Position numbers and translations under genes: made by a program
Part shown: positions 92 through 34,788 of the stretch, piece after piece
Numbering within the stretch: the stretch's first letter is position 1
Layout: each line of letters starts with the position of its first letter
The notes under the pieces: model-generated
What the model saw: only the letters and a program-made list of their open reading frames with translations
The model's database searches: none
Told to the model about the DNA's origin: nothing
Assembly: GCA_946965045.2 (NCBI GenBank)
Contig: OX337228.1
Span: forward strand, 2,108,001-2,172,000
Direction of reading: 5' to 3'
Origin: Epithemia pelagica
Lineage: Eukaryota; Protista; Bacillariophyta
Length of the DNA stretch: 64,000 nucleotides

Positions 92-2082
92 ATGTCCATT
101 CAGTCAGATCAACGAGCACAGACACAACGACCAGCAGTGAAGCTGCCTCAAGTCATTGCTTTCATGCTGGTCAGCTGGCGTATCTTTGTCGCTTCTCTGG
201 TCGGACCTGTAACTGTGGCGGTTTTCCCTCTTGTCGTTCTCCTCATGGGATGGATTTCGACAAGTACAAATGGACTGCTGACCCTACTACTTTGGCTCAG
301 CTTTTATACTGGATTCACTCTGGTGGTTCGTCGCATGACACCGACGAAAAAAGATTATGATGATTGCATGGCCAGGTTATCATCACGGTACCTGTTTCAA
401 TCATTTTTGCTGACAATCCTTGTCATTCGATTTTTCGTCTTCCCACTGAGTGAAACATTGGGGGTCTCCATTGCTTGGTATCCCGATGTTTTTTCTTTTT
501 TCCGGTTTTCTACAACTCTATTGGTCATAGAACTATCAGTGATTGCTCGATACATCGGACCTCAGTCTATTAGTGAGTGCGGCATTGTCAATCTACAGAC
601 ACTCGTGGCCATTCTGCCCACTCACCCTTCCTGCCTCTTGCGTTCACAGTGCGATGCTCCTCGTTCCCACTTGCGTCGAGTCCACTAGTTTCTTTCTTGA
701 GGTTTATAGTCAAACAAGCCATCGACGTGTTTCTTCCACCGACACACATCAATAAGCATGCTTCAACAGGTTTTCTGCCGGGTTCCTCGTCACGTTGGCG
801 TGGACGCCGTTTTCGATATCCGTCATTCTTGACATTCATCGCCCATACGATCATTGCAATCTTCTCTGGATTCGCTCTATTTTATGGTGGTTTTGTGTTT
901 GAGAACAACAGGCCGATTGGCTTTGCACTGGCCAGTAGTATATTCACAATGCTTCTTCCCCTAGCTTGGTTTGTGGCATGGGATGATCATGAGCTAGATC
1001 CCTGTCTCTATAGTGGGGGAATGGAGAGAACATACATCAATGTGTGCTTTCGGCTGTTTCGTGGTGCTTTGGTTTCCTCGGCAATGGCTATTGGAATGAC
1101 GTTTGTCACTGTCTATCTCTCCAACCAATCGTTTCCCGACAATTGGGCACTGATGAGTGGTCGTCTTTTCGTTTCTCTTCTTCTTCTCAGCCTCTGGAGT
1201 TTTCTTTTTGATGACATGCTGAGGCGAATCATATTGTTCGAGACAAATTTTGAGGAAGATGTAGGCACAACGATTCGCTGTCTAATTGAAAATGAAACTA
1301 TTTCAGAAAGGGCATTGTCGACCGGGGCCCAAGGAGCGATGGGGCTACATCAAACTCACCTTGTCGAGGCTCTAATCACGGACATGGGAATCCACTTAAC
1401 GACGAGAGTTGAGAATCAAGTTGAGTGTCCATTGGAACAGGATGTTTTACGATTCCTCATTTTACGGGCAATGGGTGGTGGTGGCGGCGACAAGAAGTTT
1501 TCCTCTATCGAGTCTTTGTGGATTCCTGACCGACAACGAGAAAATATTTACAAATATGTGGTTGCAAACTATTCCTCCACTGCATTTCTGTTTGGGCAGC
1601 ATCGCACTCATATTCTTATTCGGGGCCTTTGTGTGTTTGCCGGAGGGCTTGGCGAGGCACTCCGTCTCGCTTCTGAGAAGCAAGTCTTCCGCTTCAGAGA
1701 AGAGCGTTGGACTGTTCCTCCGGCAATGATTACCGAAATGCAGTTTACTGTTCGGGCCCTCTTACGAATATTACATGTCGTTTCAACTTGCTCAGGCCAG
1801 TCTAGCTCTGTCCAACTCAGTATACTTGTACCTGAGGTGGTGACAGCCCTCTTTCGACTTCGCAGTGGAATATACTCGATGAAGGGCGTGAATAATGGAG
1901 AAGCATCCAATTTTCAAGCAAATGCCATGCTGTCTTTACGACTGGACGAGATTGTGGAGCAGTGCGATAACGCAGCAGTTCTTGTTTGGTCAACTCAATC
2001 CAACACTACAGAAAGTATCCGCACGCTCCCAGTGGACAAGATGACGGCCCAGTGGCTACAGATGTGCGTTTCCGGCTCGTAA
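92..2082 (+). CDS. Multi-pass membrane protein, possibly nucleoporin Ndc1-like (2 exons: 92-572, 650-2082; 637 aa)
   Basis: A GT-AG intron at 573-649 (gtgagt...cacag) joins the 92 and 577 ORFs in frame. The N-half has several hydrophobic helices and the C-half is soluble. Size and topology resemble Ndc1, but no diagnostic motif is certain. Confidence 0.45.
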
Positions 2083-2183
2083 GTTCAATCATCGCACCAC
2101 AATGCATCTCCTGAAGAAAACCAGATTCCACGGACTCATAACGATAAATAGTAGTCGAAAACTGTTGTCCATGCTTGGAGTAA

Positions 2184-3687
2184 TCATGAGCGAACAACAG
2201 GACTGAAAACAACAATACCGAGCACCATTGCAACCAACAAGGAACCTAGGGCGTACGTCAGAGATCGTCCATTTCCTTGAAACAGAAACATTTCTTTCAC
2301 CATGGTTGATACCGTGCTCAGACTGCCAGCAAACCCGACTTTTATTGCAGGTACCACAGATGACGACCAGGGAGTGTCAAAGTCCGCAAGGTATCGTAGG
2401 CTTACTGCGGCAATCAAAGCCGAAACGACAGACGCAACAATGTTTGCTGTCAAAGTTCCCCACGGGATCCACTGAAGCGATGATAGGCAGCCTTTCCTTG
2501 AATTCAGACAACTGAGTTTTAGCCGGACAACAGCACCAATGGACGAGAAAGCAGATGAAAGGACTAGTTCTTGGTAAAAAGCAATGTTGAACTTCAGTGC
2601 CCCAATCAAGAAAGCGGGGATCAACACCGCCAATGAAAGAAGAGGGAGAACAATACCAATGTGCCAGTAGTTTGTGTTGTCGTTCCGCGAACAAGAACTA
2701 TCATGAGGAGAATCGGGTGGTTGATCCTGTGGCTGTGGGCCGAGTATTCGCCCTTTGTTTTTGACGTTGCTTATTCTACCAGGGAATAAGCGGAGCCACT
2801 CATGAGTGTGGTACCCCATAATGTATGAGGAAACTGCTGCACACAGGCCAATTACGTATCCAAACAAAGCAGTGACTACCTGTGGTCCCAACACGGTGAA
2901 AGTGCCGTCCATCATATGAACCATTTGCGTGTTCCATGATGCGACTGTTCAACAATAGAAAAATGTAAGAGAAAGAAAAAGTATTGAAGTACATACTCGT
3001 ATGTCTCGTCAAGCACTTACAGCTTGTGAGAGTGCCACAAAATCCGATCCTTAACCCTTCAATCAAAGCCTTGTTGCGTTGAAAGGAGTGATTAGGATGC
3101 AGCCATGGAAATGGAAGATTCAGTGAATGTGGATTTGTTATGACTCCAAGGAGAAAGCACCCAAGCATGTTGGCCGGCAGGTCCAGAAACAATGCTCCTC
3201 CTGTCTGAAGCGTTGTTCCACTTGTGGTTACACATACTCGAGAGAAGAACGGTGAAAAGATATCGTCCGGTGTTTCATATCCTTCGTCACAGTCCGCCCC
3301 GAATAATCGCCCAATGAAAACTCTACCTATACATCCCAGTATTCCATAGAGGGCAACAAGTGGTATAACCCAGTAACTTGTCTCCCTGGTTACACAACCG
3401 GTTGAGGTGCGTTGATTCTCCAAGTCAACAGAGGAAGATTCATCACGCAGACGATTCGACAGAGCCTCACTCTCAGGAACAACCTGTGTGTCAGAGGAAC
3501 CTTCATCAGAGTCAAAAGTCGACTTGACCTCTATTGGCGATGAAACAGTTGTTGTCGCCTCTGGCCGACTGCGTAGGATGCTAGAGGGACTCTCCAAAGA
3601 TCCAGAAGATTCCCATGACACACCGCCGCGGCAGAAAGCCTTGCTCTGTTCGCCGTCCGAATGAGAGGACAACTGCGTCTCTATCAT
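2184..3687 (-). CDS. FEX: Fluoride export protein (two CrcB/Fluc domains)
   Basis: Two Fluc repeats: LPANMLGCFLLG...GLRIGFCGTLTSFASW and WGTLTANIVAS...KVGFAGSLSTVST. Intron 2945-3020 restores GTLTSFASWN. Confidence 0.88.
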
Positions 3688-4258
3688 CTCATCTCCTTAC
3701 TCTTATATGCTGGAAGCTGGAACTGCAAAGTGTTGCAGAATGAAAAATGAAAAACACAAAACACGGTGGCGAGTGGCGATGCCGAAGCTGGGTGGGGAGT
3801 ACAAGCTTGTAATCGTAATCCTCCAACAACCCAGCAGCAGAAAGAAAAGATATCGTCCGTTGGATCCGTTGAAGTAGAAGATCCATATGGATAAATAGGA
3901 GAGGCAATGATGGAAAATCATTCAGATTGATGTCTGAGTTCCGAGTTGCGACATGCACTTCGTAGGAGTACGAGTCATTCTCTACACTACTATTAATATT
4001 GGAATATTATTTGTACAGTACTTGTAGACTACTTACAATTAAACAATTATTTGTTTCTGGTGTCTCACGTCTCATTCTCACGTCACGATTCACGATGGGA
4101 CAACCGGGATGGCGTGGGCTGGGGGACCAGCACGCGCGTAAATGAAGAAATGCGTCGGAAGCAAATATTACGGCGACGACAATGATGCCGTGCTCCTGCT
4201 TTGATTGGTGGCTCAGAGTCAAGTCCAACTCCAGACAGTGTGAGAAAAGAGGAAGTCA

Positions 4259-7159
4259 ATGCCAAGAACAAGTCAAATCGTCTCGAATCAGTCCGAGCAA
4301 GATTTCAATCCGGACGAAAGGGATCGATTGAATGCCTTGTGGAGAACCTACTGGAGAGAACTTGTGGACATTCGTCCAACGACGGAACACAAACGAAAGA
4401 TCCCCGGCCCTTCCTACCGCTTTGCTTTCCGACTTCATCGATTTGCTACCGCGGTCCTCCACAAAGCTATTTCTCCTAATGGACAAGGAGGCCCGACGAC
4501 TGATTCAAGCCATGTCAAAAACCCAGATGACTCGTGCTTGAGGGACTTTATATCGTGCGTTGTTGTTGATGGGTCCACAAGCTCAGGTGAAAAATGCCGA
4601 ACTATGAGGCTTCCGTGCAGTGGAAGAACTGTTTTCCCCATTTATTTTCAGGAATTCTCATCGGAATTGAAGGAATTTGAAAATCGCGGCCAGGAACCAA
4701 GTCCAGATTATGTTCGCAAAAACTCTTTCGATGCCTTTCTCTACCATTTATCAGGTCAAGCATTGGCGGTACTTGGATGCTCCCTAGCCTTGGCAACTAC
4801 TTCTGCGGTGATGGGATCACGAACACCGGAATCGACGGAAGGACTCATGGAAGACATTAACCGCTTTGTGGATGGTATTCAATTTGTCGTTCGTTTCCTC
4901 CACGTCGAACCCGCAATCCAAATGATGAATGTCAAAACATGTTTGGTTGGAAAATTTGTTTCCGTGAAAGGGCATATAGTCAAAGCGAGACCCAAACGAT
5001 TGAGACTGGCCACAGCAGACTTTGTTTGCCCCAAGTGTGGAGGTGCTATTACACACGCCTTTGAAGCAGGGCGTTTCTCTACACCAACCTCTTGCCCAAC
5101 CAAAGGCTGTCTTAGCCGGAGCTTCGAAATGTCTAGGGCAACCGCTCGTTACATCAATATACAGGAGCTTCGACTGCAGGAATCACAGGATGAGAGCACT
5201 GCTCATGCTGGTCGCGCTCCTCGTCAACTTGTGGTGGAGGTTGCCCATGATCTCGTCGAATCCTGTCGTCCAGGCGATATGGTTCAGATTGCCGCTACTA
5301 TTGAAGCAGTGAACACGGCTCTCGCGGCAGGACAACGGGGGAAACGAGCAAAGGAGACGAGTACCTATCAACTGTATTTGATCGGGCATTCAATCAGCAC
5401 TCTCTCCCAGAGTAACAATCCCCAAAAGAAGAAAGGTAAATCTCGACAGAAGGTCTACTCTCAGGAACAACTGCAATGCATAACTCAGCTGTGCCATGCT
5501 GACCATCAATACTTTGGGCTGATCGAACGGCGAGCGTTCCCGTTTGACCTCCTGGTGAGAAGTCTATGTCCTTCAATCATTGGTGTAAGTCTGTTTGTGC
5601 TTGTCAATATAGAGTTGAGTTGATACACTCCGTGTTGACGACTTGCCCTTTCCGAATTTACAGCATAATGAAGTGAAAGCAGGCCTTCTTTTATGTCTTC
5701 TCGGGGGTACCCCAAATACAGACAGAAACAACTCGATCCGATCTAACTCGCACATGTTGATTGTGGGAGATCCTGGTATGGGGAAAAGCCAAATGCTTCT
5801 TGCTGCGAATCAACTTGCGGCGAGAAGTGTGTATGTTGGTGGAAATACGTCTAGCACAACAGGTCTAACAGTCACATTGACAAAAGAAGACAAGGGAGGA
5901 CAGTCAGCCATTGAAGCCGGGGCCTTAGTTCTCGCTGATCAAGGAATATGCTGCATCGACGAATTGTAAGGTATCTTGCAGCAACACTATGAAGTATGCT
6001 TTCTTGTGGTAGTCTCATTACCATTGTTGTTTCTTTTGAAAATCCCAGTGACAAGATGGCCAAGAACCATCAGGATGGACTCCTGGAAGCAATGGAACAA
6101 CAACAAGGTATGTGTTCTTAGATTTCTTGGAATGGTCTTGGAATGACTGAGATGCATGCACTCAACTTTGTGCTGTGTAAGTGTCAATCGCCAAGGCTGG
6201 TGTTGTTGCTTCTTTACCTGCACGCTGCAGCCTTATCGCCGCAGCAAATCCGAAACAAGGGACCTATAACATGGACAAATCGGTCTCGGAAAATCTGAAC
6301 ATGGCAAAACCGATTCTCTCGCGTTTTGATTTGGTGTATATTCTCCGTGATCGCGTCGATTCAAATCTTGATCGTATGGTTTCGAGTAATATTATGAATC
6401 TTTACAGACAGAACCCCTCCTCTCGCGGTGTTACCCACCCGACCCACATGTCTTCAAACTCTGTGCCGACCATGGACGCAGAAAATAGATTGTCTCTTTC
6501 TGACCGTCTAAGTTGGGTCACGGAGATGCAGAAAGAACCACTCCCCGCCGATCTTGTTCGGGACTATATTGCATACGCTAGAGAATACTGCAAGCCCAAG
6601 CTCACACGGGAGGCTGCGGCAGTCCTAAAGAACTACTTTATGGAGCTAAGGTAAATCAGTTAATGTCTCATATTTGTCTGTGTTTCTCTTTCTAACGCTT
6701 TTCTGTTTCCCTCGACGTTTCAGGTATCCTGCCGATGGCCGTCGCAAGGCGGACACTGTTCCAATAACATCCAGACAACTTGAGGCTTTGATACGATTGT
6801 GTCAAGCTAGAGCAAAGGCCTGTCTGCGTGAGCTTTGCCTCGAAGAAGATGCTTTGGACGTAGTTGAATTGATGAAACGGTCCGTCGAGCAAGTCCACAC
6901 AGACGAGGCCGGGGGCATTGATGCAATTCGCGGAGGAGCAGGAGGCATTAGCAACCGGAAAATGAAGAAGGCTTTTCAGAAGGAGTTACTTTCGTTAGTT
7001 GGCGCCAAAGGCGGCGAAGTTTCTCTCGACGACATGCGACGCATAGCAGAACGGGTACACTGTGGTCTTGGGGAATTCCATAATCTTATTGAAGACCTCA
7101 GAACAAACGCCTTTCTTGCGAGAGGAAAGAACGGTACCTACAAAGTTTTATCGACGTAA
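4259..7159 (+). CDS. MCM8: MCM8 DNA helicase (5 exons)
   Basis: CPKC/CPTKGC zinc finger, Walker A GDPGMGKSQ, Walker B CCIDEFDKM after splicing, EAMEQQQVSIAKAG, SLIAAANP, arginine finger SRFDL, ITSRQLEALIRL. Introns 5585-5663, 5966-6048, 6108-6181, 6651-6723. IQELRLQE...GRAPR and FDLLVRSLCPSIIGH are MCM8-like. Confidence 0.88.
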
Positions 7160-7227
7160 AAATACTCAAATGGTATTTGTCCGTAACTGGTGAAATTTTT
7201 AAGGGCTATATCAATCTATAGTTGCAC

Positions 7228-10200
7228 TTAGAAATTCCCATTATCCTTTTTGTTGCGAGGTGCAGGTAGCCACTGAATCAAGCCTTTCTCGTACCAAACT
7301 GTGTATGCCCAGTCGAAGCCATCGCCTCGTGTGTCAACGAAGTTGGTATACTGAGCGACGGGAATCGCTCCTGGAGCAGATTGGGTTTCTTCCGACCAGG
7401 TCCGTGCCACAACAGGACGGTCCTGCGCAGGGCCATAATTGACAGCCCCTTTGTAGTGAGTTCTCTGACTTGGCTCTCCGTCATCGTACACTCTGCAACC
7501 TTCCCATGACTTCTCATCACCGGATACACGGGACTTGTCATTGGAGAGCCGTGATGGCATTCTGTTTGTCTGAAACCTCTGTGCTTGCGAATGTTGATGA
7601 ATACTCGTTGGAGTGTGTTTCCCCTCAGCACTTGGATGTCGCATGCGATCCATGTTGCTGTTAACGTCGCGACTCTGCTGCGGCAAACTGCTACTATGGG
7701 GAGCCGCTCTGTCCTCCTCTTCCCCATCCAGCTCAAATTGATGCACTGCCACAACCCTGTGGTTGCTAGATGATCCTTCCACTTTGTAGCTTGAGTTCAG
7801 TTTGCGAGATAGAGCGGCACTTTCCTGGAACGGAGCCCGGCCAATCGTAGCTTTTGAAATGTTGTTGTTACGTACATCTCGGGTCCCCAAGTTGTTGGGG
7901 ACTGTCCTGTGACCATTTTCCATTCGAACTACTTGAGATCGACGTGAATCTTGGCTGCTTGTCCTTGATGGCGGCTGATATGATGCTGATCGGGATGAAC
8001 TTTGCGTGTTTCGGTAGTCGACCGAAGCAATTGATCGGCTGGGATTTCGGACTGACCAACTTGCCGCAGCAGCACGACGAGAACGCGATTTAATTTGGGC
8101 ATCACGTGCGGCTCTCATTGAAGCAGCCAATTTCCGCGCTCGCCATCCTCTTACCACACATTGGATAATCAGCGCACAAAGAAGTTCGTTGTAACGCACC
8201 CAGCAAAAGTGCATCCTCCAGGCACTTTGTATACGGGTCGCGGATATATCCCCAATCTCCTGGGATCTTCTCCAATAAAGATCTTCAGTAGCCCGACGGG
8301 CAATGAAGCCTCTTGCCGTGGATTGGATCAATATTGCGTATGCAAGTAAGTAAGCTACTCTCTCTCGGGCAATACACTTGCGCCAAACGGATTGAACCTT
8401 CACGATTCGATATCGGTCATAATGGAAATTCATCCGACAAACATAACCTCTAAAAATTCTCTGAATTGCTGTTGCACAGAAAAGATCAACGTTGAGGCAA
8501 TCCCTGGCCCAAAACCCTCTGAATACGGCTTGAATGGTCACGGCGGCCGCGATGTAAATCGGCATTCCTATGGACTCATCATTTGCTTCTTGGCCGCGTT
8601 GAAGTGAATCTGTGTCGGCATCAATCTGGAATTGCGAAGCGAGTTCTCTATCTCGTTCTTGTTTCAGATAGATGACAAATTCTCGAGCTACGTGCCTTCT
8701 GTATGCTGTTTGAATTACGACAGCTGCAACAGCCTCGATGAACGCCAGACGAGCAGATGCAATGGACTCATTCTGTCAAGAAAAAGGATTTGTAAGTGCA
8801 TGCGAACACGAGAAGTGGTACCAAGACTGACAGCCTACTTACGTCAGTTGATTGCGTTGAACTTTGTTTCTCCTGTTGTTGGTGATGTTCGTATGGTTGA
8901 GACTTTTGACTGCTACTGTTGGCCGACAGGTGTTCCTCCTCAACCCGTTCGTAATCGATTGAGTAGTCCGACCGGTATATGGGGGACACTTCTGACCCGG
9001 TGTCATCAAGAAAAGGTGGTGGGCCCTCTAGTTTGGAGCGTTGATCTGACACATAGTCCCGTCCCTGTTGATTTCGCTTTGCCACCTGCATCCCATGGTT
9101 TGCGGCCTCAAGTGCGGCGTTGGCGTTATCCAAGTAATATCTTATAAACGCAGGGTCTCGAGCATGGGCGGCCCTGTTTGGCAGTAAACACTTGTATTTG
9201 GAATCGCGCAAAATGGACTTGGGAGGTTTTCGCAGATTGTTGGCGGGGTGATCGAGCACAGAAGATGGAGAGACGTCGGAGTTGTGTTGTGGACGCTGTA
9301 GATTTGCATTGTTATTTGGTAAGGCATGCTCGTCCTTGAGAAAAACTGTAGAGTGTTCCAGTTTAGCAGAGAAGCGGACATTTCTGGAAAGAGTGGTTGG
9401 CTCTTCGTCTGCCACCGTCTCTGGGGCTTCTTCTTCAATGCTCTGGCGATTAGCGGACGCCGACGCAACGGAACGTTGCTCGCTGACTCCTCCCATGGCA
9501 TTGGTAGAAAGAAGTGGAAAGGAATATTCATCAATGGAACACGTTTCGTCTTTTCGTTCCAAGTGTTCGTCCTCTACCCACTGGGACGGCGAAGTCGCCG
9601 GAGCGCCTTCTTCACTATTGACAACAACAGGTGGAAGAGGAACCGACGAATAGGGAAGATCGAATGGTTTACTCGATGAGTTGGAATCTGTCACGGTACT
9701 TTCCGCTGTGAGAGACTCCTTTTCATCTATTGATGCCCTTGAATTCACCATCCATCCAAGTGAATGACGGCCCAGAGAGGACGTGGACTTGTTATTCCCA
9801 CCTGTTTCCAGATGATGCTGACTTTTGGATTCTGCTTTGCCACCAATTCGATCTTTTGCATTCGCAGATCGTGATCGGTCGGAAAACACTAAACTTGGAG
9901 GCATATTAACAATTTTGGGTTCTCGTTTCTTTTTCTTCCCCCCTACAAAGCGCTTTTGTCTTTTCTTCGACTCAGACCGTGCTTTCTTGCGTAATAGTTC
10001 CTGCTGACTAGTCCCTGTGTTCACACTTCCCCCGTCTGCTGCCGTTGCGTCACCTCCAAATATGAGAGGAAAGTCTGAAGGTGTCGAGGGTCGCTGACGA
10101 TGTGGAGACGAAATGAGAGCGATTCCGTTGCCTGTAGTTATTCTCTGGCCATGAGACCGACTACTGCTCTCGATAACCCCCGTCCCCTGCGAGACACCTC

Positions 10201-27461: not shown

Positions 27462-27683
27462 TGATCGAGGCATTGATTGGGGCCAAAGGACACCCGACGA
27501 GAACTAAGGCGAGGCTAATTTCAGACATGATTCAACGTGAACTTTGCACGTGCTTCGTCACCCAGTTTGGTAGCCTTCATCCGAAAAGCAGCCCCAGTCA
27601 GGATCTCATCGGCACGCCAGACGCCAGCATTACGTGAATACTTACCACGCATTAATTGAAGAAGAGCAAATATAGAACAAGGA

Positions 27684-28547
27684 TGTCAGGATAGTGTAGT
27701 CTGTACGCCGTACGGTCCACCAATCCGGTCCGCTTGGGAGTGTATGCCCCGTAGCCATAACACACCTACCCCCCAGCGGGGGTGGCTTTGAGGGTGTAAT
27801 TTCGTGTAGCCACCCCCATCTCTAAGAGCAAATAATAACCTATTTCTTGACGGTAGGCATATCTCATTTCCTCCACCACGATAACAACACGGGCCATGGT
27901 GTTGCACAGGTTGTTGTGCACCTATTTGGACTCTTGAAACCTGTCTTCCCAGTCATAGACCTCAAACCAATAGTGTAGAATGCATCTGCATCACCAAAAT
28001 TGAAAGGTTAAGGCTATTATGCGTCAGACTCATAGGCGCCATGCCTCGTGGCACAGGCACGGAAGCGACGTCTCACAATTTCGAACGAAGCAACTCAAAG
28101 GGACAATATGGCTCTTATCTTGCATTGTTTGAGCACCTATTGATACACAATACACATAGCAGTAGTAGTTACGCACAGCATTGATAACAAAACATCAACT
28201 CTCATGTATTTTCATGCCATCATTGTCTCGTATTGTGCCCGTATTACGCGTCACTGTATTGGTCATTTCCTAGAGTGGCCCGTATCCACTGTGTCCCTCA
28301 CAATGCACTGCCATGGTACCATTATGAAGCATATGATGGTCGGATCATGATGGGGTGGCCATTGGAGGTCACCAGCAACAACAAAGTTTGATTGTCGTGT
28401 TGTTATCGTGGTGGAGGAAATGAGATATGCCTACCGTCAAGATCCAGCGAAAAGAGAAGGGGGTGTTTCAACGAAATTACTCCCTCAAAAACACCCCCGC
28501 TGGGGGGTAATAACACACCCAATAGTCACTTCTTTCTTGTGCATGAC
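27684..28547 (+). repeat. 5' LTR (27684-27766 + 28520-28547), split by a TIR element
   Basis: Matches 34355-34464 exactly once the 743-bp insert and one TSD copy are removed. Confidence 0.95.
27767..28509. mobile_element. Non-autonomous TIR DNA transposon (MITE-like, Mutator-type TSD length)
   Basis: 10-bp TSD ATAACACACC (27757-27766 / 28510-28519). TIRs of ~115-125 bp have a perfect outer 18 bp (taccccccagcgggggtg) and a perfect inner 47 bp (27845-27891 / 28396-28442). No internal transposase ORF. Confidence 0.93.
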
Positions 28548-28560
28548 GATTAACAGTCTC
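28548..28560 (+). promoter_or_regulatory. Primer-binding site complementary to a tRNA-Asn(GUU) anticodon arm
   Basis: GATTAACAGTCTC directly follows the LTR. Its reverse complement GAGA-CUGUUAA-UC reads as tRNA positions 28-40 with anticodon GUU. Confidence 0.6.
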
Positions 28561-28619
28561 ACCGTCTTTTGGTTTGTTGTTGTGTTGTTGTTGCTGAAAT
28601 TTTATTTTTCTATTTGACC

Positions 28620-30104
28620 ATGTCAGATCCTGCCAGTAATTCAAACATGCCTGACACGATGGAGGCGGCAGAAGCGACGCCCGTCACCCCTGTCAGGAGA
28701 TCTCCCGGTATGCCTGCAGTGGTAGAAACCATGGCTTTATTGCTGGCAGCTCCTGATGACGATGCATCCGCCTTGAGGACTGCTCTTGTGGCCATGTTCT
28801 CGGTGTGGCATGTCACTACGTAGGAAGACTTGTCAGTTTTTAGTGACACAGACGTGGCAGAATATATTGCAGACAAAAAGCCCGATCAACTCTCCCCCCT
28901 TATCATCAAGAAGCGTTTGGGTTACCTGGTCCGGTATGCCAAGCTTGGTAAGCCCTTGACTAGCACTCTCGCGATGACTTCCATAATTCGGGAGGTGGAT
29001 GAGTACTCGGTAGCCATTTCTTCTCGCTCTGTTCGATTTCAAAATTCCCCTTCACGTTCCAGTGCTATGACCACTGACAAGAAGACCGTCCCCGACTTGG
29101 ATAAATTTTCTGGCAAGGACGAGGATTATTATTCTTGGCGTGACTCCACGGTCAATAAAATGGGGCAATCCAGATTGAGCTCTTTTCTCTCCGACGCAGC
29201 CTACGTTGCCAAGCATAATGACCTCGCCGTCAGTGTTTTTTATTCCATGCGTGCGGCTTTGCAGGATGGGACTGCTGCAAATCTTGCTACTGCTTTGTAT
29301 GACAAGAAACGCTATGATCCCCAGCTGCTCTGGCAGGAAATTGAAAATTACTATGATACCAGCGTGAATCGTGCTAACGTCGTTTTGTTCGAAGTTAAGC
29401 GTCTCCTTAATTTACGCTTGGATGCTGATACTTATCCGACACAGTTCATTTCGGATTTTCGTGCGTGTTTGCTTCGGTTGGACAAGAACCAAGCAAGTTT
29501 GGCGACGGATACGGACACTCTCCGAGCTTTGCTCTTGGTTGCGATTCAAGACGACCAATTTGAGCCTGTCCGTGATTCCATCGTCAATGATCCTACACGG
29601 GATGTTGATGCAATTTTGAAGGAGTTACGTGATCGGGACACATCCTTGCAGATTAAGGATAGTGCCAACTCAGATATGACCTCTTCCAGGACCATTCGAC
29701 GTGCTTCTCACACCCAAGGTAATCAGAAACGACCTACGACTTCGGGCTCGACGGCGTGGACTATTCCCCGTTTCCTGGACTCCTGGAAAGCTGCCTTTGG
29801 GTTGAAACTGTTCCAGTTGCTTTTAGATTGGCGCTCCATGGCGATGTACAAGAAAGCTACCCAGGACGCTCTCAATTCGTCTTTCGACACAATTGTGGAG
29901 ACTGTCACTGGCCACAGCAAGAACAAACGCAAGAGTCGCCGTGGAGGTACCGATGCTGCTTCTGGAAGTGAGAATGCTACCGATGGTCACGATGGGGCCG
30001 GGGCTGCCCAGGCATCTGGTGTAAATGAGGACTCTGAGGACCGTCCACGTAAACGCATCCGTCTGCGTAAAGGCCGTTGCGTAGTGACGGAACGAAACGC
30101 CTGA
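28620..30104 (+). pseudogene. gag: Copia gag ORF with one premature stop
   Basis: ATG at 28620, in-frame TAG at 28821, ends TGA 30102-30104. Contains VPDLDKFSGKDEDYYSW and a basic C-terminus RPRKRIRLRK. Confidence 0.8.
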
Positions 30105-33100
30105 CTGGTTGCGGCTGAAGAGGAGCCATGCGGCACGTTACGACGAGTCGTGCGGTTGGCAAGTGGGTTATCTCAAGCCGATGCCTCTCAGCACATCTTG
30201 ATTGCTGATAGTGGTTGTGACCAAATGTTGATTACGTCTGTTTGGAAGATTTTGCACCACACAGGACGGTCAATGGTGATGACTGGCGCATTTGCTGGAC
30301 GCGACGCTGGACAGCAATTCCCGGTTGTGACTGCAACGGCCAAAGTCATTGACGAATATGGCAAGGCATACGCAGCAGTTGTTCATGAAGCTTTGTATGA
30401 TGGTAGTCCACATCAGGTTGAGTCTTTGCTATCTATCCATCAGTCGTTGGCAAACCATGACAATGGAATTGATGACCGAGCTCGCTGTGAGAAGGATGTG
30501 GACGGCAATCCTGGTAAGCAGAAGGCACGCTTTAATGACAAGGAACTTTCATTTCATTTCGATGGAGTGAAGTGTTTCTTTGAGGTAGCGGCCATTAGTG
30601 ATACCGAGTTGTCCCAGCTTCCCAAAATTTATTTGACAAGTCGTGAGCCGGGGCTTTACCAGCCGACCGAGCGCACGCATACTATGCGGGCCACGAAAAG
30701 TTCTAAGGTGCCTCCACATTTACCCCCGTGGAAGCATTGCCTGGGTTTTATTCCCGACCATGTTGTGGACAAAACACTTCAGGCAACAACTCAAATGGTT
30801 CCGACAGTAGAGGCTGAGACCCGAGAGCATATGCGGGACCATATTTTGACCCGTTTGCCTGAATTGAAGCGCCGGCGATTGAACGTTACAGTTTGTGTTG
30901 ACACGTTTTTCTCATCAATCAAATCGGTGAGACGCTTCACGTGCTGGACCCAGTATTCATTTGTTGAATCTGGGTTGGACGTTGTTTTCCCGATGCGTCG
31001 TCGATCTCAAGTCTATCCTACCTTACCCAAGTTGTTCTCTGAGTATGGGATACCCCGGCTCGGCGTGTCCATTCGGACAATGCACCAGAGTATAAGTCTG
31101 CACGGTGGACAAGCTGTCTTGGGAAACACGCAGTAACTTCATCCTTCACTGAGCCTGACCATCCCAATGAAAACCTTTGTGAACGTCGGGGTGGTACTAT
31201 TAAGGCAGCAGTTGTGCACTTGTTGTTGACCACTGGTGCAGAGGTGGAGTTCTGGTGTTATGCTCTTGAGTACATTGCGTTACTTCAGACCATAATTGCT
31301 CGTCGCACACTGGGTTGGCGTTGCGCTCATGAGTGCCATTTTGGGGATACTCCTGATATCAGTGTCTTCCGGTTCATATTCTGGTGTCCGGTATGGTACT
31401 ACGCTCCCAGTCAATCTTTCCCGAGGTCCAAGATGCTTCCTGGACGGTTTGTGGGTATTGCTCGCAACGTCGGGGATGCCTTTTGTTTCTTCTTGATATT
31501 AACAGAACCCGATGATTCTACGGCCACCCGCCAAGTTATTGCTCGGTCAGTGGTACGGCGTCGGTTTCCACAGGAAAGCCCTCCGGTAGTGGAGGAAACT
31601 AATGTGAATTCGTTACGCTTTTGCAAAAGCAACGGCGTTACGGTGTTGGAAGACCCACATGAAGATGCGGGGTCTCCTTTATCGGACTTTGTTTCAGAGG
31701 AGAAACCCTCTGCCCTTCCCTCTGAATACACTGCTCCCGATGTCGATCCAATGGATGATCCACTTCGTGATGCGATTGCTGAGGTCTATGGACCGCCTAC
31801 CAAGCGTCAGCGTGTGGACTTTGTGAACCCATTGGATGCAGCAAGAGTGGCGTTCAAGGATATTGATCCTGTGTATACTCAGTCTCCTCTGGCTGCTCCG
31901 TCTGTTCCAGTTGAAGATCCCAAGCCGACAGCAAACCCAACTATGGTTTCAGAGGAGTGTCTGATGGTGGAGGAGGATGTTAGTTTGGCGCCACCTGAAG
32001 TCACCCAGGTCCCACATGATGACGATCGTACGGTGAGGGATACAGAGTCCACTGGCCAAGCAGCAACTCCATTTACATCATCAGGGTCCCAGGACTGTAC
32101 GCCAGAAATCTTTGAGGACACGACCCAACATTTCGAAAACCTCGCAGAGGGTGTCGATGATGATGAGGGCTTTGACAAGATAGTTGGTCACACGTGGGAG
32201 AATGGAATCCTGATGCTGGAGATTTTGTTTCGGACAGATGAGAAGTCTTTATTACCCTTCACTGTGGTGAAGCGAGACCATCCATTGGTTGTTGCCCGTT
32301 ACATCCTAGATAAAGGTGTCGGGACAGCAGATGGTCGTTATACGTCTGGTAGATACACACGGTGGGCACATGGGTTGGTCCGTCAAGTGAATCGTACTCT
32401 CCGTCGGGTCCTTCGAATGGGTAATGGTGATACCATTTGTCTTCCGGACGGCCAGCGTTTCCAAGTGAGTGAGTCGACAGGTGACGCTCGTTTGGTGCGG
32501 CGCACTGGTGTGAAACAGAAAGGCCACCAGCAGCCCGCTCGTTCCTCCCGGAAAAGGAAGAAGCCAGGCAGAATCAGTCGTGGCCAACCTGTGATCAAGT
32601 ATGGTGTGGAAGTTCCCAAGGATGTTTCCCATGCTTTTGAGTTGGATGAGCAGAATGGTAACACTTTGTGGCGTGATGCAACTGAGAAGGAAATTGCCTC
32701 GTTGCTTGCTCTTGGTTGTTTTGACTTTCGCTCTCCAGACTACAAACCCGGTTCGGATTATCAGTTTGCCAAGCTAACCATGATTTATGAGGTCAAACAG
32801 GATGGCCGCCGCAAGGCACGTTTGGTTGCTGGCGGACATTTAATTGATCCGAGGGGTGTCAACTCCAGGTCTACCGTGGTGAAGGGAATCAGTGTTCGCC
32901 TGTTGGATGTCATTGCACACCGCGATAAACTGACAACCCTCTGTGGCGACATCGGTAATGCGTTCGTCACAGCACCATGCCTTGAAAAAGTGTATTCTCG
33001 TGCAGGCCCGGAATTTGGCGACCGACAAGACTCTGTGATGATTTTGGTAAAGGCTCTTTACGGGTTACGATCGTCGAGTCGTGCGTTTCGCAGCCATTTT

Positions 33101-34309
33101 GCAGATTTTCTTCGCTCAATGGGATTCTCTGCATCACGGTATGACCGTGATGTGTGGATGCGTCTTCGTGATGAAGGCGACGGCTACGATTACATTGCAC
33201 CCACGTGGACGATTTCAAAATCGTTGCAAGAGACCCCCAATGTTGGTTATCACAGATTGCGTCCGTGTTTTTGCTGAAGTCAACTGGACCACCGTCCTAT
33301 TACCTTGGCAATGACTACAGCTGGTCGAAGGATGAAAGTACTTGGGTTCTCGGCTGTGCCACATACGTTAAAGAGTGCATCCGCCGTCTAGAAGATGATT
33401 CCATGATCGACGGTAAACTGTGGGAACACAAGAATCCTTTGCCAGCCGAGTGCCATTCGGAAATGGATGAAACTCCTGATCTGAATGAGGACGGTATCAG
33501 GTTGTACCAGACATTGATTGGCATGGCCCAATGGGCGTGTACAATTGGACGACTGGACATTTCTTTTGCCGTGTCCTCACTCAGTCGGTTTTCGGCAGCC
33601 CCAAGGGAAGGTCATTTGGAGTTAGCAGTGCATCTCTTTGGTTTCCTCAAGAAGCATCCAAATCGCCAGATTGTTATTGACTCGCGACCATTGGTGGTTC
33701 CAGAGGAGTTTTGCCAGGAGACCTTTCACCCCGATTTCCTTGAGGACTATCCTGATGCTAACGAGGAGATAGATCCTGGATTGCCGAAAGCTTTTGGTAT
33801 GGAACTTGAGACATCGATTTTCTTTGACGCTGACCACGCTCATGACCAGAAAACACGCCGTTCGATCACTGGACTGATCATGTTCGTTGGACGTACACCG
33901 GTGCTGTGGTCAAGCAAGCGACAGGGATGCATTGCCACGTCGACGTATTGCGCAGAATTTGTGGCCATGCGTACGTACGGCAGTGGAGGAAGCTGTATCA
34001 TTGCGCTATATGTTGCGTTGCCTGGGGGTTCCGGTCTCGGCACCTACCCAACTTTATGGCGACAACTATGGTGTCGTTTAGAGTGCATCAATTCCGGAGT
34101 CTGAGTTGAAGAAGAAACATATTGCCATTTCCTACCATTTTGTGAGAGAAGCTATCACAGCGAAGATTGTCAACGCTGTCTGGGTGCCTACTGACCAAAA
34201 TTGGAGCGATATTTGTACGAAGGCCTTGGGTCCGAACATATTCAATGATTTGGTTAGCGACGTTATGACTACCTTACCACTTTCTTTCCCTGTGTTGGGT
34301 TTGAGATGA
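30105..34309 (+). pseudogene. pol: Copia pol (protease-integrase-RT-RNaseH), disrupted
   Basis: ADSGCDQ protease; VDTFF/HSDNAPEY/ENLCER integrase; KYGVEVP, RKARLVAGGH, GDIGNAF, KALYGL, HVDD RT; DADHAHD, AEFVA, KHIAISYHFVRE RNaseH. Frameshifts at ~31050, ~33196 and 33970; TAG at 34079. Confidence 0.93.
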
Positions 34310-34346
34310 GGTGGAGTCCGGCTTGTGGAGAACCACGGTACAGCCT

Positions 34347-34354
34347 AAGAGGAG
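34347..34354 (+). promoter_or_regulatory. Polypurine tract of the copia element
   Basis: aagaggag immediately precedes the 3' LTR core. Confidence 0.6.
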
Positions 34355-34465
34355 GTCAGGATAGTGTAGTCTGTACGCCGTACGGTCCACCAATCCGGTC
34401 CGCTTGGGAGTGTATGCCCCGTAGCCATAACACACCCAATAGTCACTTCTTTCTTGTGCATGACA
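34355..34465 (+). repeat. 3' LTR
   Basis: gtcaggatagtgtag...gtgcatgaca, followed by the TSD aagga. Confidence 0.95.
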
Positions 34466-34788
34466 AAGGAGAAGAAGCAACAAGTCAATCGATCTCTCGT
34501 GACAAGAGGAAAGATTTGTGTGCTATTGGGGATTGGGAGTCCTAATTCCTATTAACTCCCAGCGGCTAAGAAAGTATGAATTTGAGTTTTGACTAACATT
34601 CAGATCTCAAAGTACTTGAGCGACCCAAACATGACTTATCGACTCTGGAAAGTACACTACCTGCTCTTCAAGGACCTGTGACGTGCAGCCAGAATTTGCA
34701 AAGCACCGCATTTTCGGTGCAAGTCTCTCAATTATTCGCGAAGTGTTTCCAGAGTCAAACTGTTGTACGACAAGGTCTAAACGAAATA

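Follow-up and report, generated by a model that had tools for sequence, protein, structure and literature searches.

In the Ty1 retrotransposon of Saccharomyces cerevisiae, which makes blunt TG...CA cDNA, the inner edges of the long terminal repeats (LTRs) encode the TG and CA, which pass into the cDNA from the RNA template. More generally, in LTR reverse transcription the 3' LTR is the sole source of U3 and the 5' LTR the sole source of U5; the first base made from the polypurine tract (PPT) primer defines the left cDNA end, and the first base made from the primer-binding site (PBS) primer the right one. Here, we describe a Ty1/copia element of the diatom Epithemia pelagica, found in a 64,000-nt stretch of its genome (GCA_946965045.2, contig OX337228.1, positions 2,108,001–2,172,000, forward strand; hereafter, the window). 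It belongs to a clade of diatom elements that shares with Ty1 its superfamily (RVT_2), a 5-bp target-site duplication (TSD), and integrated TG...CA ends, but in this clade the outermost T and A are found at neither inner edge. Because these two bases are absent from the template, they would most likely be added without one at each jump, judging from the sequences.

Other described systems resemble this clade in part. In Drosophila copia and yeast Ty5, the PBS pairs with a tRNA's anticodon stem-loop, and the primer stops after the second base of the stem's 3' arm; their primer is initiator tRNA-Met and their CA/PBS junctions are ordinary (slashes mark junctions throughout). The PBS of the window element likewise matches an anticodon stem-loop, that of tRNA-Asn, and not the 3' CCA end, and its predicted half-tRNA primer would end at the same point of the stem. 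In Tf1 of Schizosaccharomyces pombe and in retroviruses, reverse transcriptase (RT) adds untemplated nucleotides to finished cDNA ends, past the encoded CA, and integrase trims them off again by 3' processing, whereas the base added in the diatom clade would be kept and would form the A of CA. Such addition is usually regarded as noise for integrase to trim. At the U5 terminus of HIV-1, the terminal LTR base pair is also not derived from viral U5 RNA; RNase H leaves a tRNA ribonucleotide there, which serves as its template, and the pair is later trimmed, whereas in the diatom clade the base supplied by a primer remnant would be the wrong one. Where integrase carries out 3' processing (retroviruses, Ty3), the inner edges hold extra bases that the outer edges lack, whereas the diatom clade shows the opposite, with outer edges that are one base longer.

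Both ends of the window element were read directly, and the coordinates were then checked by script. The layout is as follows (window positions).

27679–27683, + strand: left TSD, AAGGA, 5 bp
27684, + strand: outer T, found only at the outer edge of the 5' LTR
27685–27766, + strand: first 82 nt of the 5' LTR core, beginning GTCAGGAT
27767–28509, no strand assigned: non-autonomous terminal inverted repeat (TIR) element of 743 bp with 57-nt TIRs, a later insertion foreign to the retrotransposon
28520–28547, + strand: last 28 nt of the 5' LTR core, ending CATGAC with no A after it
28548–28562, + strand: PBS, beginning GATTAACAGTCTCAC and abutting the 5' core directly (TGAC/GATTAAC)
34347–34354, + strand: PPT, AAGAGGAG, abutting the LTR core without an intervening T (AAGAGGAG/GTCA)
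34355–34464, + strand: 3' LTR core, 110 nt GTCA...TGAC, ending CATGAC
34465, + strand: outer A, found only at the outer edge of the 3' LTR
34466–34470, + strand: right TSD, AAGGA, 5 bp

These coordinates establish the anatomy given in the preliminary description of this locus, which had placed the T and the A outside a 110-bp GTCA...TGAC core and outside the AAGGA duplication, and had read the inner junctions (TGAC/GATTAAC, PPT/GTCA) as lacking both bases. The position equivalent to the outer T is occupied, before the 3' LTR, by the last G of the PPT, and the position equivalent to the outer A is occupied, after the 5' LTR, by the first G of the PBS. With no first T in the 3' LTR and no final A in the 5' LTR, canonical TG...CA termini are not present on both LTRs, and this holds across the clade. 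The claim that the two 110-bp LTRs are identical also stands (110 of 110 positions), once the 743-bp insertion in the 5' LTR, which the preliminary description omitted, and one copy of its duplication are removed and the 5' core is rejoined. A repeat finder at first gave just 87 shared bases for the LTR pair, because the 5' LTR is split by this insertion. The letters at 28547/8, 34354/5, and 34464–66 were reproduced in short-read-derived contigs from three runs of the same organism, a check that covered three of the four junctions, with the outer T at 27684 outside its direct coverage. An 80-nt contig spans TGAC-A-AAGGA at a depth that corresponds to a single copy, and no contig skipping the element (empty allele) was seen among the short-read-derived contigs.

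The PBS is the exact 15-nt complement of nt 26–40 of tRNA-Asn(GTT), as given by a tRNA gene of the same genome (locus L016), a match from which the predicted primer is a half-tRNA of the copia/Ty5 type ending at C40. The next tRNA base is U41 and the base preceding the PBS is C; since this C cannot pair with U41, pairing, and hence the templated U5 end, stops at ...GAC. Self-priming of the Tf1 type, which is reported for other copia families of the genome, was rejected, as complementarity between the PBS and the LTR extends over 5 nt at most. Given the standard scheme of reverse transcription, inner edges without T or A mean that the RNA of the element contains neither base.

Protein searches with the pol and gag pieces of the window element found relatives in other diatoms, among them Epithemia clementina, Fragilaria crotonensis, and several ENA assemblies, and eleven contigs were taken for comparison; the relatives used derive from at least five other diatom sources (Epithemia, Fragilaria, and three ENA assemblies). 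The census of the four junctions, including a fragment on E. pelagica contig C16 that is described below, gave the following counts.

Inner-left junction, GAGGAG/GTCA: 8 of 8 (window, L059, L183, L184, L185, L187, L189, L190)
Inner-right junction, GAC/GATTAA: 9 of 9 (window, C16 fragment, L059, L183, L184, L186, L187, L188, L189)
Outer-left base, T: 7 of 8 (window, C16 fragment, L183, L186, L187, L188, L189; exception L184)
Outer-right base, A: 6 of 6 (window, L183, L184, L185, L187, L190)

Canonical TG and CA are absent from the inner LTR ends of these other copies, and the outer bases do not vary with the target; neither of the two outcomes that the preliminary description had named as refuting its idea was therefore observed. 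Under the local base composition, the chance probability is about 7e-4 for the outer T and about 3e-4 for the outer A. In all three elements with both flanks intact, T...A lies inside a 5-bp TSD (window AAGGA, L183 GTGCA, L187 TTGTT). The recurrence of the pattern in independent insertions in other diatom assemblies is established, which bears out the earlier judgement that two chance mutations were an unlikely cause. In metagenome contigs, an exact 16-mer scan (PPT plus LTR start) returned at least 120 stretches, and none of the 80 taken as loci encodes a related pol; some of these loci carry a gut-metagenome label and were set aside after this joint screen.

In a maximum-likelihood tree of the RT region, the eight trait-bearing elements form one clade on a long branch (99/100 support), whereas the next relatives, L060 and L061, lie outside it. 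The RT-region identity to the window element is 53–79% in the trait-bearing elements and 39–41% in L060 and L061, which have the same PPT followed by an ordinary TG (AAGAGGAG/TG). The trait has a single phylogenetic origin. Gag and pol are uninterrupted in L059, L188, and L190, and the single clade together with these intact copies indicates that the architecture is inherited and compatible with continued transposition. A clade-wide trait with intact members has survived many rounds of retrotransposition, which implies that the T and the A are regenerated in each cycle from templates that lack them.

Individual relatives have features of their own. The deepest member of the clade, L059, has a PBS at 4824–4841 (GATTAAGAG...) that resembles half tRNA-Lys(CUU) and not tRNA-Asn, and its contig wraps on itself (1–109 matches 6056–6164), which would reflect either two LTRs collapsed or a circular form assembled. 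In L183, a reverse-oriented copia element (1900–7995) is nested in the leader, and in L189, the 3' LTR core gives way to foreign sequence as soon as its first four bases have passed (from 14678).

A search of the E. pelagica genome with the LTR and leader as queries gave a single full copy of the family and a duplicated 490-bp fragment on another contig, C16, which is 89% identical to the window element and keeps TGAC/GATTAAC; its LTR start aligns as T-GTCCGGAG, in an LTR alignment used for comparing termini only. This related LTR-leader-gag fragment is present twice in a segmental duplication of C16 (2533381–2543115 and 2554268–2563970; 20.9-kb offset, ~9.7 kb aligned, 99% identity). For the RNase H piece, the closest relatives within the genome share only 42% identity.

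About 76 other loci in the genome have the same PBS with an A before it and are members of other families. This A is missing only in the window family and in one copy of family B that has a local 2-nt insertion. Families B, C, and F share with the window family the half tRNA-Asn PBS, the 5-bp TSD, and a terminal 3' A, but differ in that their termini (TA...TA, TG...CA, TC...GA) are present also at the inner 5'-LTR/PBS edge. The comparison was extended to both LTRs and the TSDs in family B, a control whose PBS is the same: in eight elements the 5-bp TSD is exact, inner and outer ends are equal, and the LTR adjoins the TSD directly with no additional base, which is unlike the window family. Family B is an abundant copia family (L029–L058) with at least 40 LTRs of 766 bp, non-canonical TA...TA termini (TAGTAG...CTACTA), and a half tRNA-Asn PBS. 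In its copy L029/L030 (C10 ~1804600–1812000), an extra AC between the 5' LTR and the PBS equals the first two bases of the TSD (ACGAT), and 13 post-LTR bases are common to the PBS side and the 3' flank; LTR gene conversion extending into the flank may have produced this copy. Two further families with the same PBS are represented by L015/L019 and L017/L022. One of them has TC...GA termini (TCGCA...TGCGA), and in the other the 5' LTR begins (G)TTCGCAC and ends TGTCA, the termini not being inverted repeats.

The preliminary description had proposed that the terminal bases are untemplated, and the conserved inner junctions, the constant outer bases, and the single RT clade support this. We consider it fairly likely that one untemplated A is added to each 3' end of the cDNA, making a CA-3' end, and that the element's own RT is probably responsible. 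With slightly more reserve, we favor the view that the whole clade does not encode the terminal base pair joined by integrase and that the A of CA-3' is supplied in each cycle by obligatory untemplated addition at both ends. To a similar degree, we lean towards an end sequence that is thus partly set by a property of an enzyme rather than by the genome of the element.

From the arrangement of primers and ends, we infer the element's RT as the agent and a CA-3' end as the purpose of the added A, with the timing as follows. The half tRNA ending at nt 40 would prime the minus strand and the PPT (AAGAGGAG) the plus strand, and these two primers would fix the templated linear cDNA ends as GTCA...GAC. 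Each strand would be copied to the end of its DNA template, after which one untemplated A would be put on its 3' end, the likeliest agent being a terminal-transferase activity of the element's RT that favors A at blunt DNA ends. This addition would turn a poor ...AC-3' end into ...CA-3'. Integrase would join only ...CA-3' ends, at a target cut with a 5-bp stagger, and host gap repair would fill in a T opposite each added A. Integrated copies would then read TSD-T-(GTCA...GAC)-A-TSD, and the inner edges, the sole ones reaching RNA, would never carry the T or the A.

Polymerases and RTs prefer adding A to blunt DNA ends, and the presence of A on both 3' ends, despite differing neighboring primer bases, fits such a preference. 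RTs add untemplated nucleotides to blunt ends, Tf1 RT most strongly (PMC3035444), and Ty1 integrase, which needs a CA-3' end, is stated, in a passage that cites Moore and Garfinkel (2000), to use AC-3' ends >100-fold less well than CA-3' ends (PMC2939329).

Several points weigh against this explanation. Untemplated addition by RT usually varies in length and base, and a uniform single A needs strong selection by integrase; the uniformity would be explained if integrase selects the A-tailed ends. A host polymerase could instead be what adds the A. Integration with TA or GA ends by other copia families of the genome leaves it unproven that CA is strictly required, and the feature common to all the families is the terminal 3' A. 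Both flanks are intact in just three elements, and one of these, L187, has a repetitive target and could also be parsed with both extra bases, two T, on its left side and no extra base on its right. L184 has an A instead of a T before its core; it also has no TSD, and its left flank may be rearranged.

Host activity is an unlikely source of the untemplated A's, whether as a nuclear or cytoplasmic polymerase or transferase acting on linear cDNA or as integration-coupled repair. The sequence data, which show untemplated bases that are always A on the 3' strand, do not single out an enzyme and to that extent accommodate it. However, sister copia families in the same cells gain no base, which makes a general host A-tailing of cDNA unlikely, and the trait follows the element's own phylogeny. 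Templating of the outer bases by a primer remnant, as in HIV-1, or by tRNA nt 41 draws on the U at position 41 of tRNA-Asn, which would template an A, and on the A that stands before GATTAAC in all other tRNA-Asn-primed families of the genome. Yet the C before the PBS in this clade cannot pair with U41, and mismatch extension would substitute for this C instead of adding an A. Had the last primer base been kept, both plus-strand ends would show G (C40 giving the right one and the final G of the PPT the left one), where A and T are seen. The left T has no source under this explanation, which we regard as very improbable. Slightly less probable still is another templated route, such as synthesis through a 2-LTR junction or a jump to the opposite cDNA end. 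Nothing supports it directly; the inverted-repeat ends (GTCAG and CTGAC) make end-to-end pairing conceivable, but a ...GAC/GTC... junction would give G next, not A, and no T or A adjoins either core anywhere in the element. We regard the exclusion of templated sources as established on these grounds.

We give hardly any credence to either of the two remaining alternatives. If the element normally integrated as GT...AC, the outer bases of the window copy would stem from a single unusual event, from two mutations by chance, or from misassembly of the AAA run. The family has a single full copy in the genome, and this copy is old enough to have been hit by a transposon and to have acquired an early stop and two changes of frame; nevertheless, independent contigs confirm the letters, independent insertions repeat the outer bases in the proportions given above, and the inner junctions are conserved across a deep clade. 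A one-off event, chance mutation, and assembly error were rejected on the basis of the contig check, the junction census, and the RT tree. Alternatively, the T and the A could be target bases within a 6–7 bp duplication at a preferred A-N5-T target, and a 7-bp A-N5-T duplication would indeed put T to the left and A to the right of the element. The 7-mers mismatch in all three elements that could be compared (window CAAGGAT vs AAAGGAG; L183 CGTGCAT vs AGTGCAT; L187 ATTGTTT vs ATTGTTG). A TSD of 6–7 bp was rejected, as the duplication is limited to the inner 5 bp.

Besides the direct LTRs, the 5-bp TSD, and a PBS and a PPT that adjoin the 5' and the 3' LTR, respectively, the Ty1/copia features of the window element include RVT_2 (PF07727), which is located in the middle pol piece (window 31214–33274, E 8.9e-10) and is found in relatives too. 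No match to rve was found at E ≤0.01 in the pieces of the window element, and a weak rve match lies upstream of RVT_2 in the relatives L182–L184. The coding regions are as follows.

28620–30104, + strand: gag-like open reading frame (ORF), with an in-frame premature TAG at 28821–28823 and a TGA stop at 30102–30104
30150–34104, + strand: pol region in three pieces (30150–31136, 31214–33277, 33205–34104) with two frame changes between them

The internal region is degenerate, with the premature TAG and the two pol frame changes besides the transposon in the 5' LTR. The pol piece restarts in frame 45 nt past the gag TGA (window 30102–30150), and separate gag and pol ORFs are found also in relatives; stop-codon readthrough could be a route of pol expression. 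The 743-bp insertion is a foldback element whose 57-nt TIRs begin TACCCCCCAGCGGGGG, with a second perfect inverted repeat of 47 nt further in. It is flanked by a 10-bp TSD (ATAACACACC, at 27757–27766 and 28510–28519), and its TIRs and the length of this duplication suggest a Mutator-like element.

A paper on diatom copia elements mentions only occasional differences of a few nucleotides in length between the LTRs of a pair (PMC2806351). No description of LTRs with terminal bases missing at the inner edges was found in the literature searched, the coverage of which is incomplete, leaving novelty unproven. As far as this literature goes, untemplated addition and integrase trimming are already known, and no account was found of a clade that would retain the added base as the source of its terminal base pair.

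The comparative sequences indicate that a successful and widespread clade relies on untemplated addition to complete its ends. If this is true, LTR finders that require identical TG...CA on both LTRs, or that use LTR identity alone, would misplace the ends and TSDs by one base in such families. The clade would be a natural system for studying the coupling of end-addition by RT and end-recognition by integrase, and the terminal bases of an LTR would not have to be encoded by the element.

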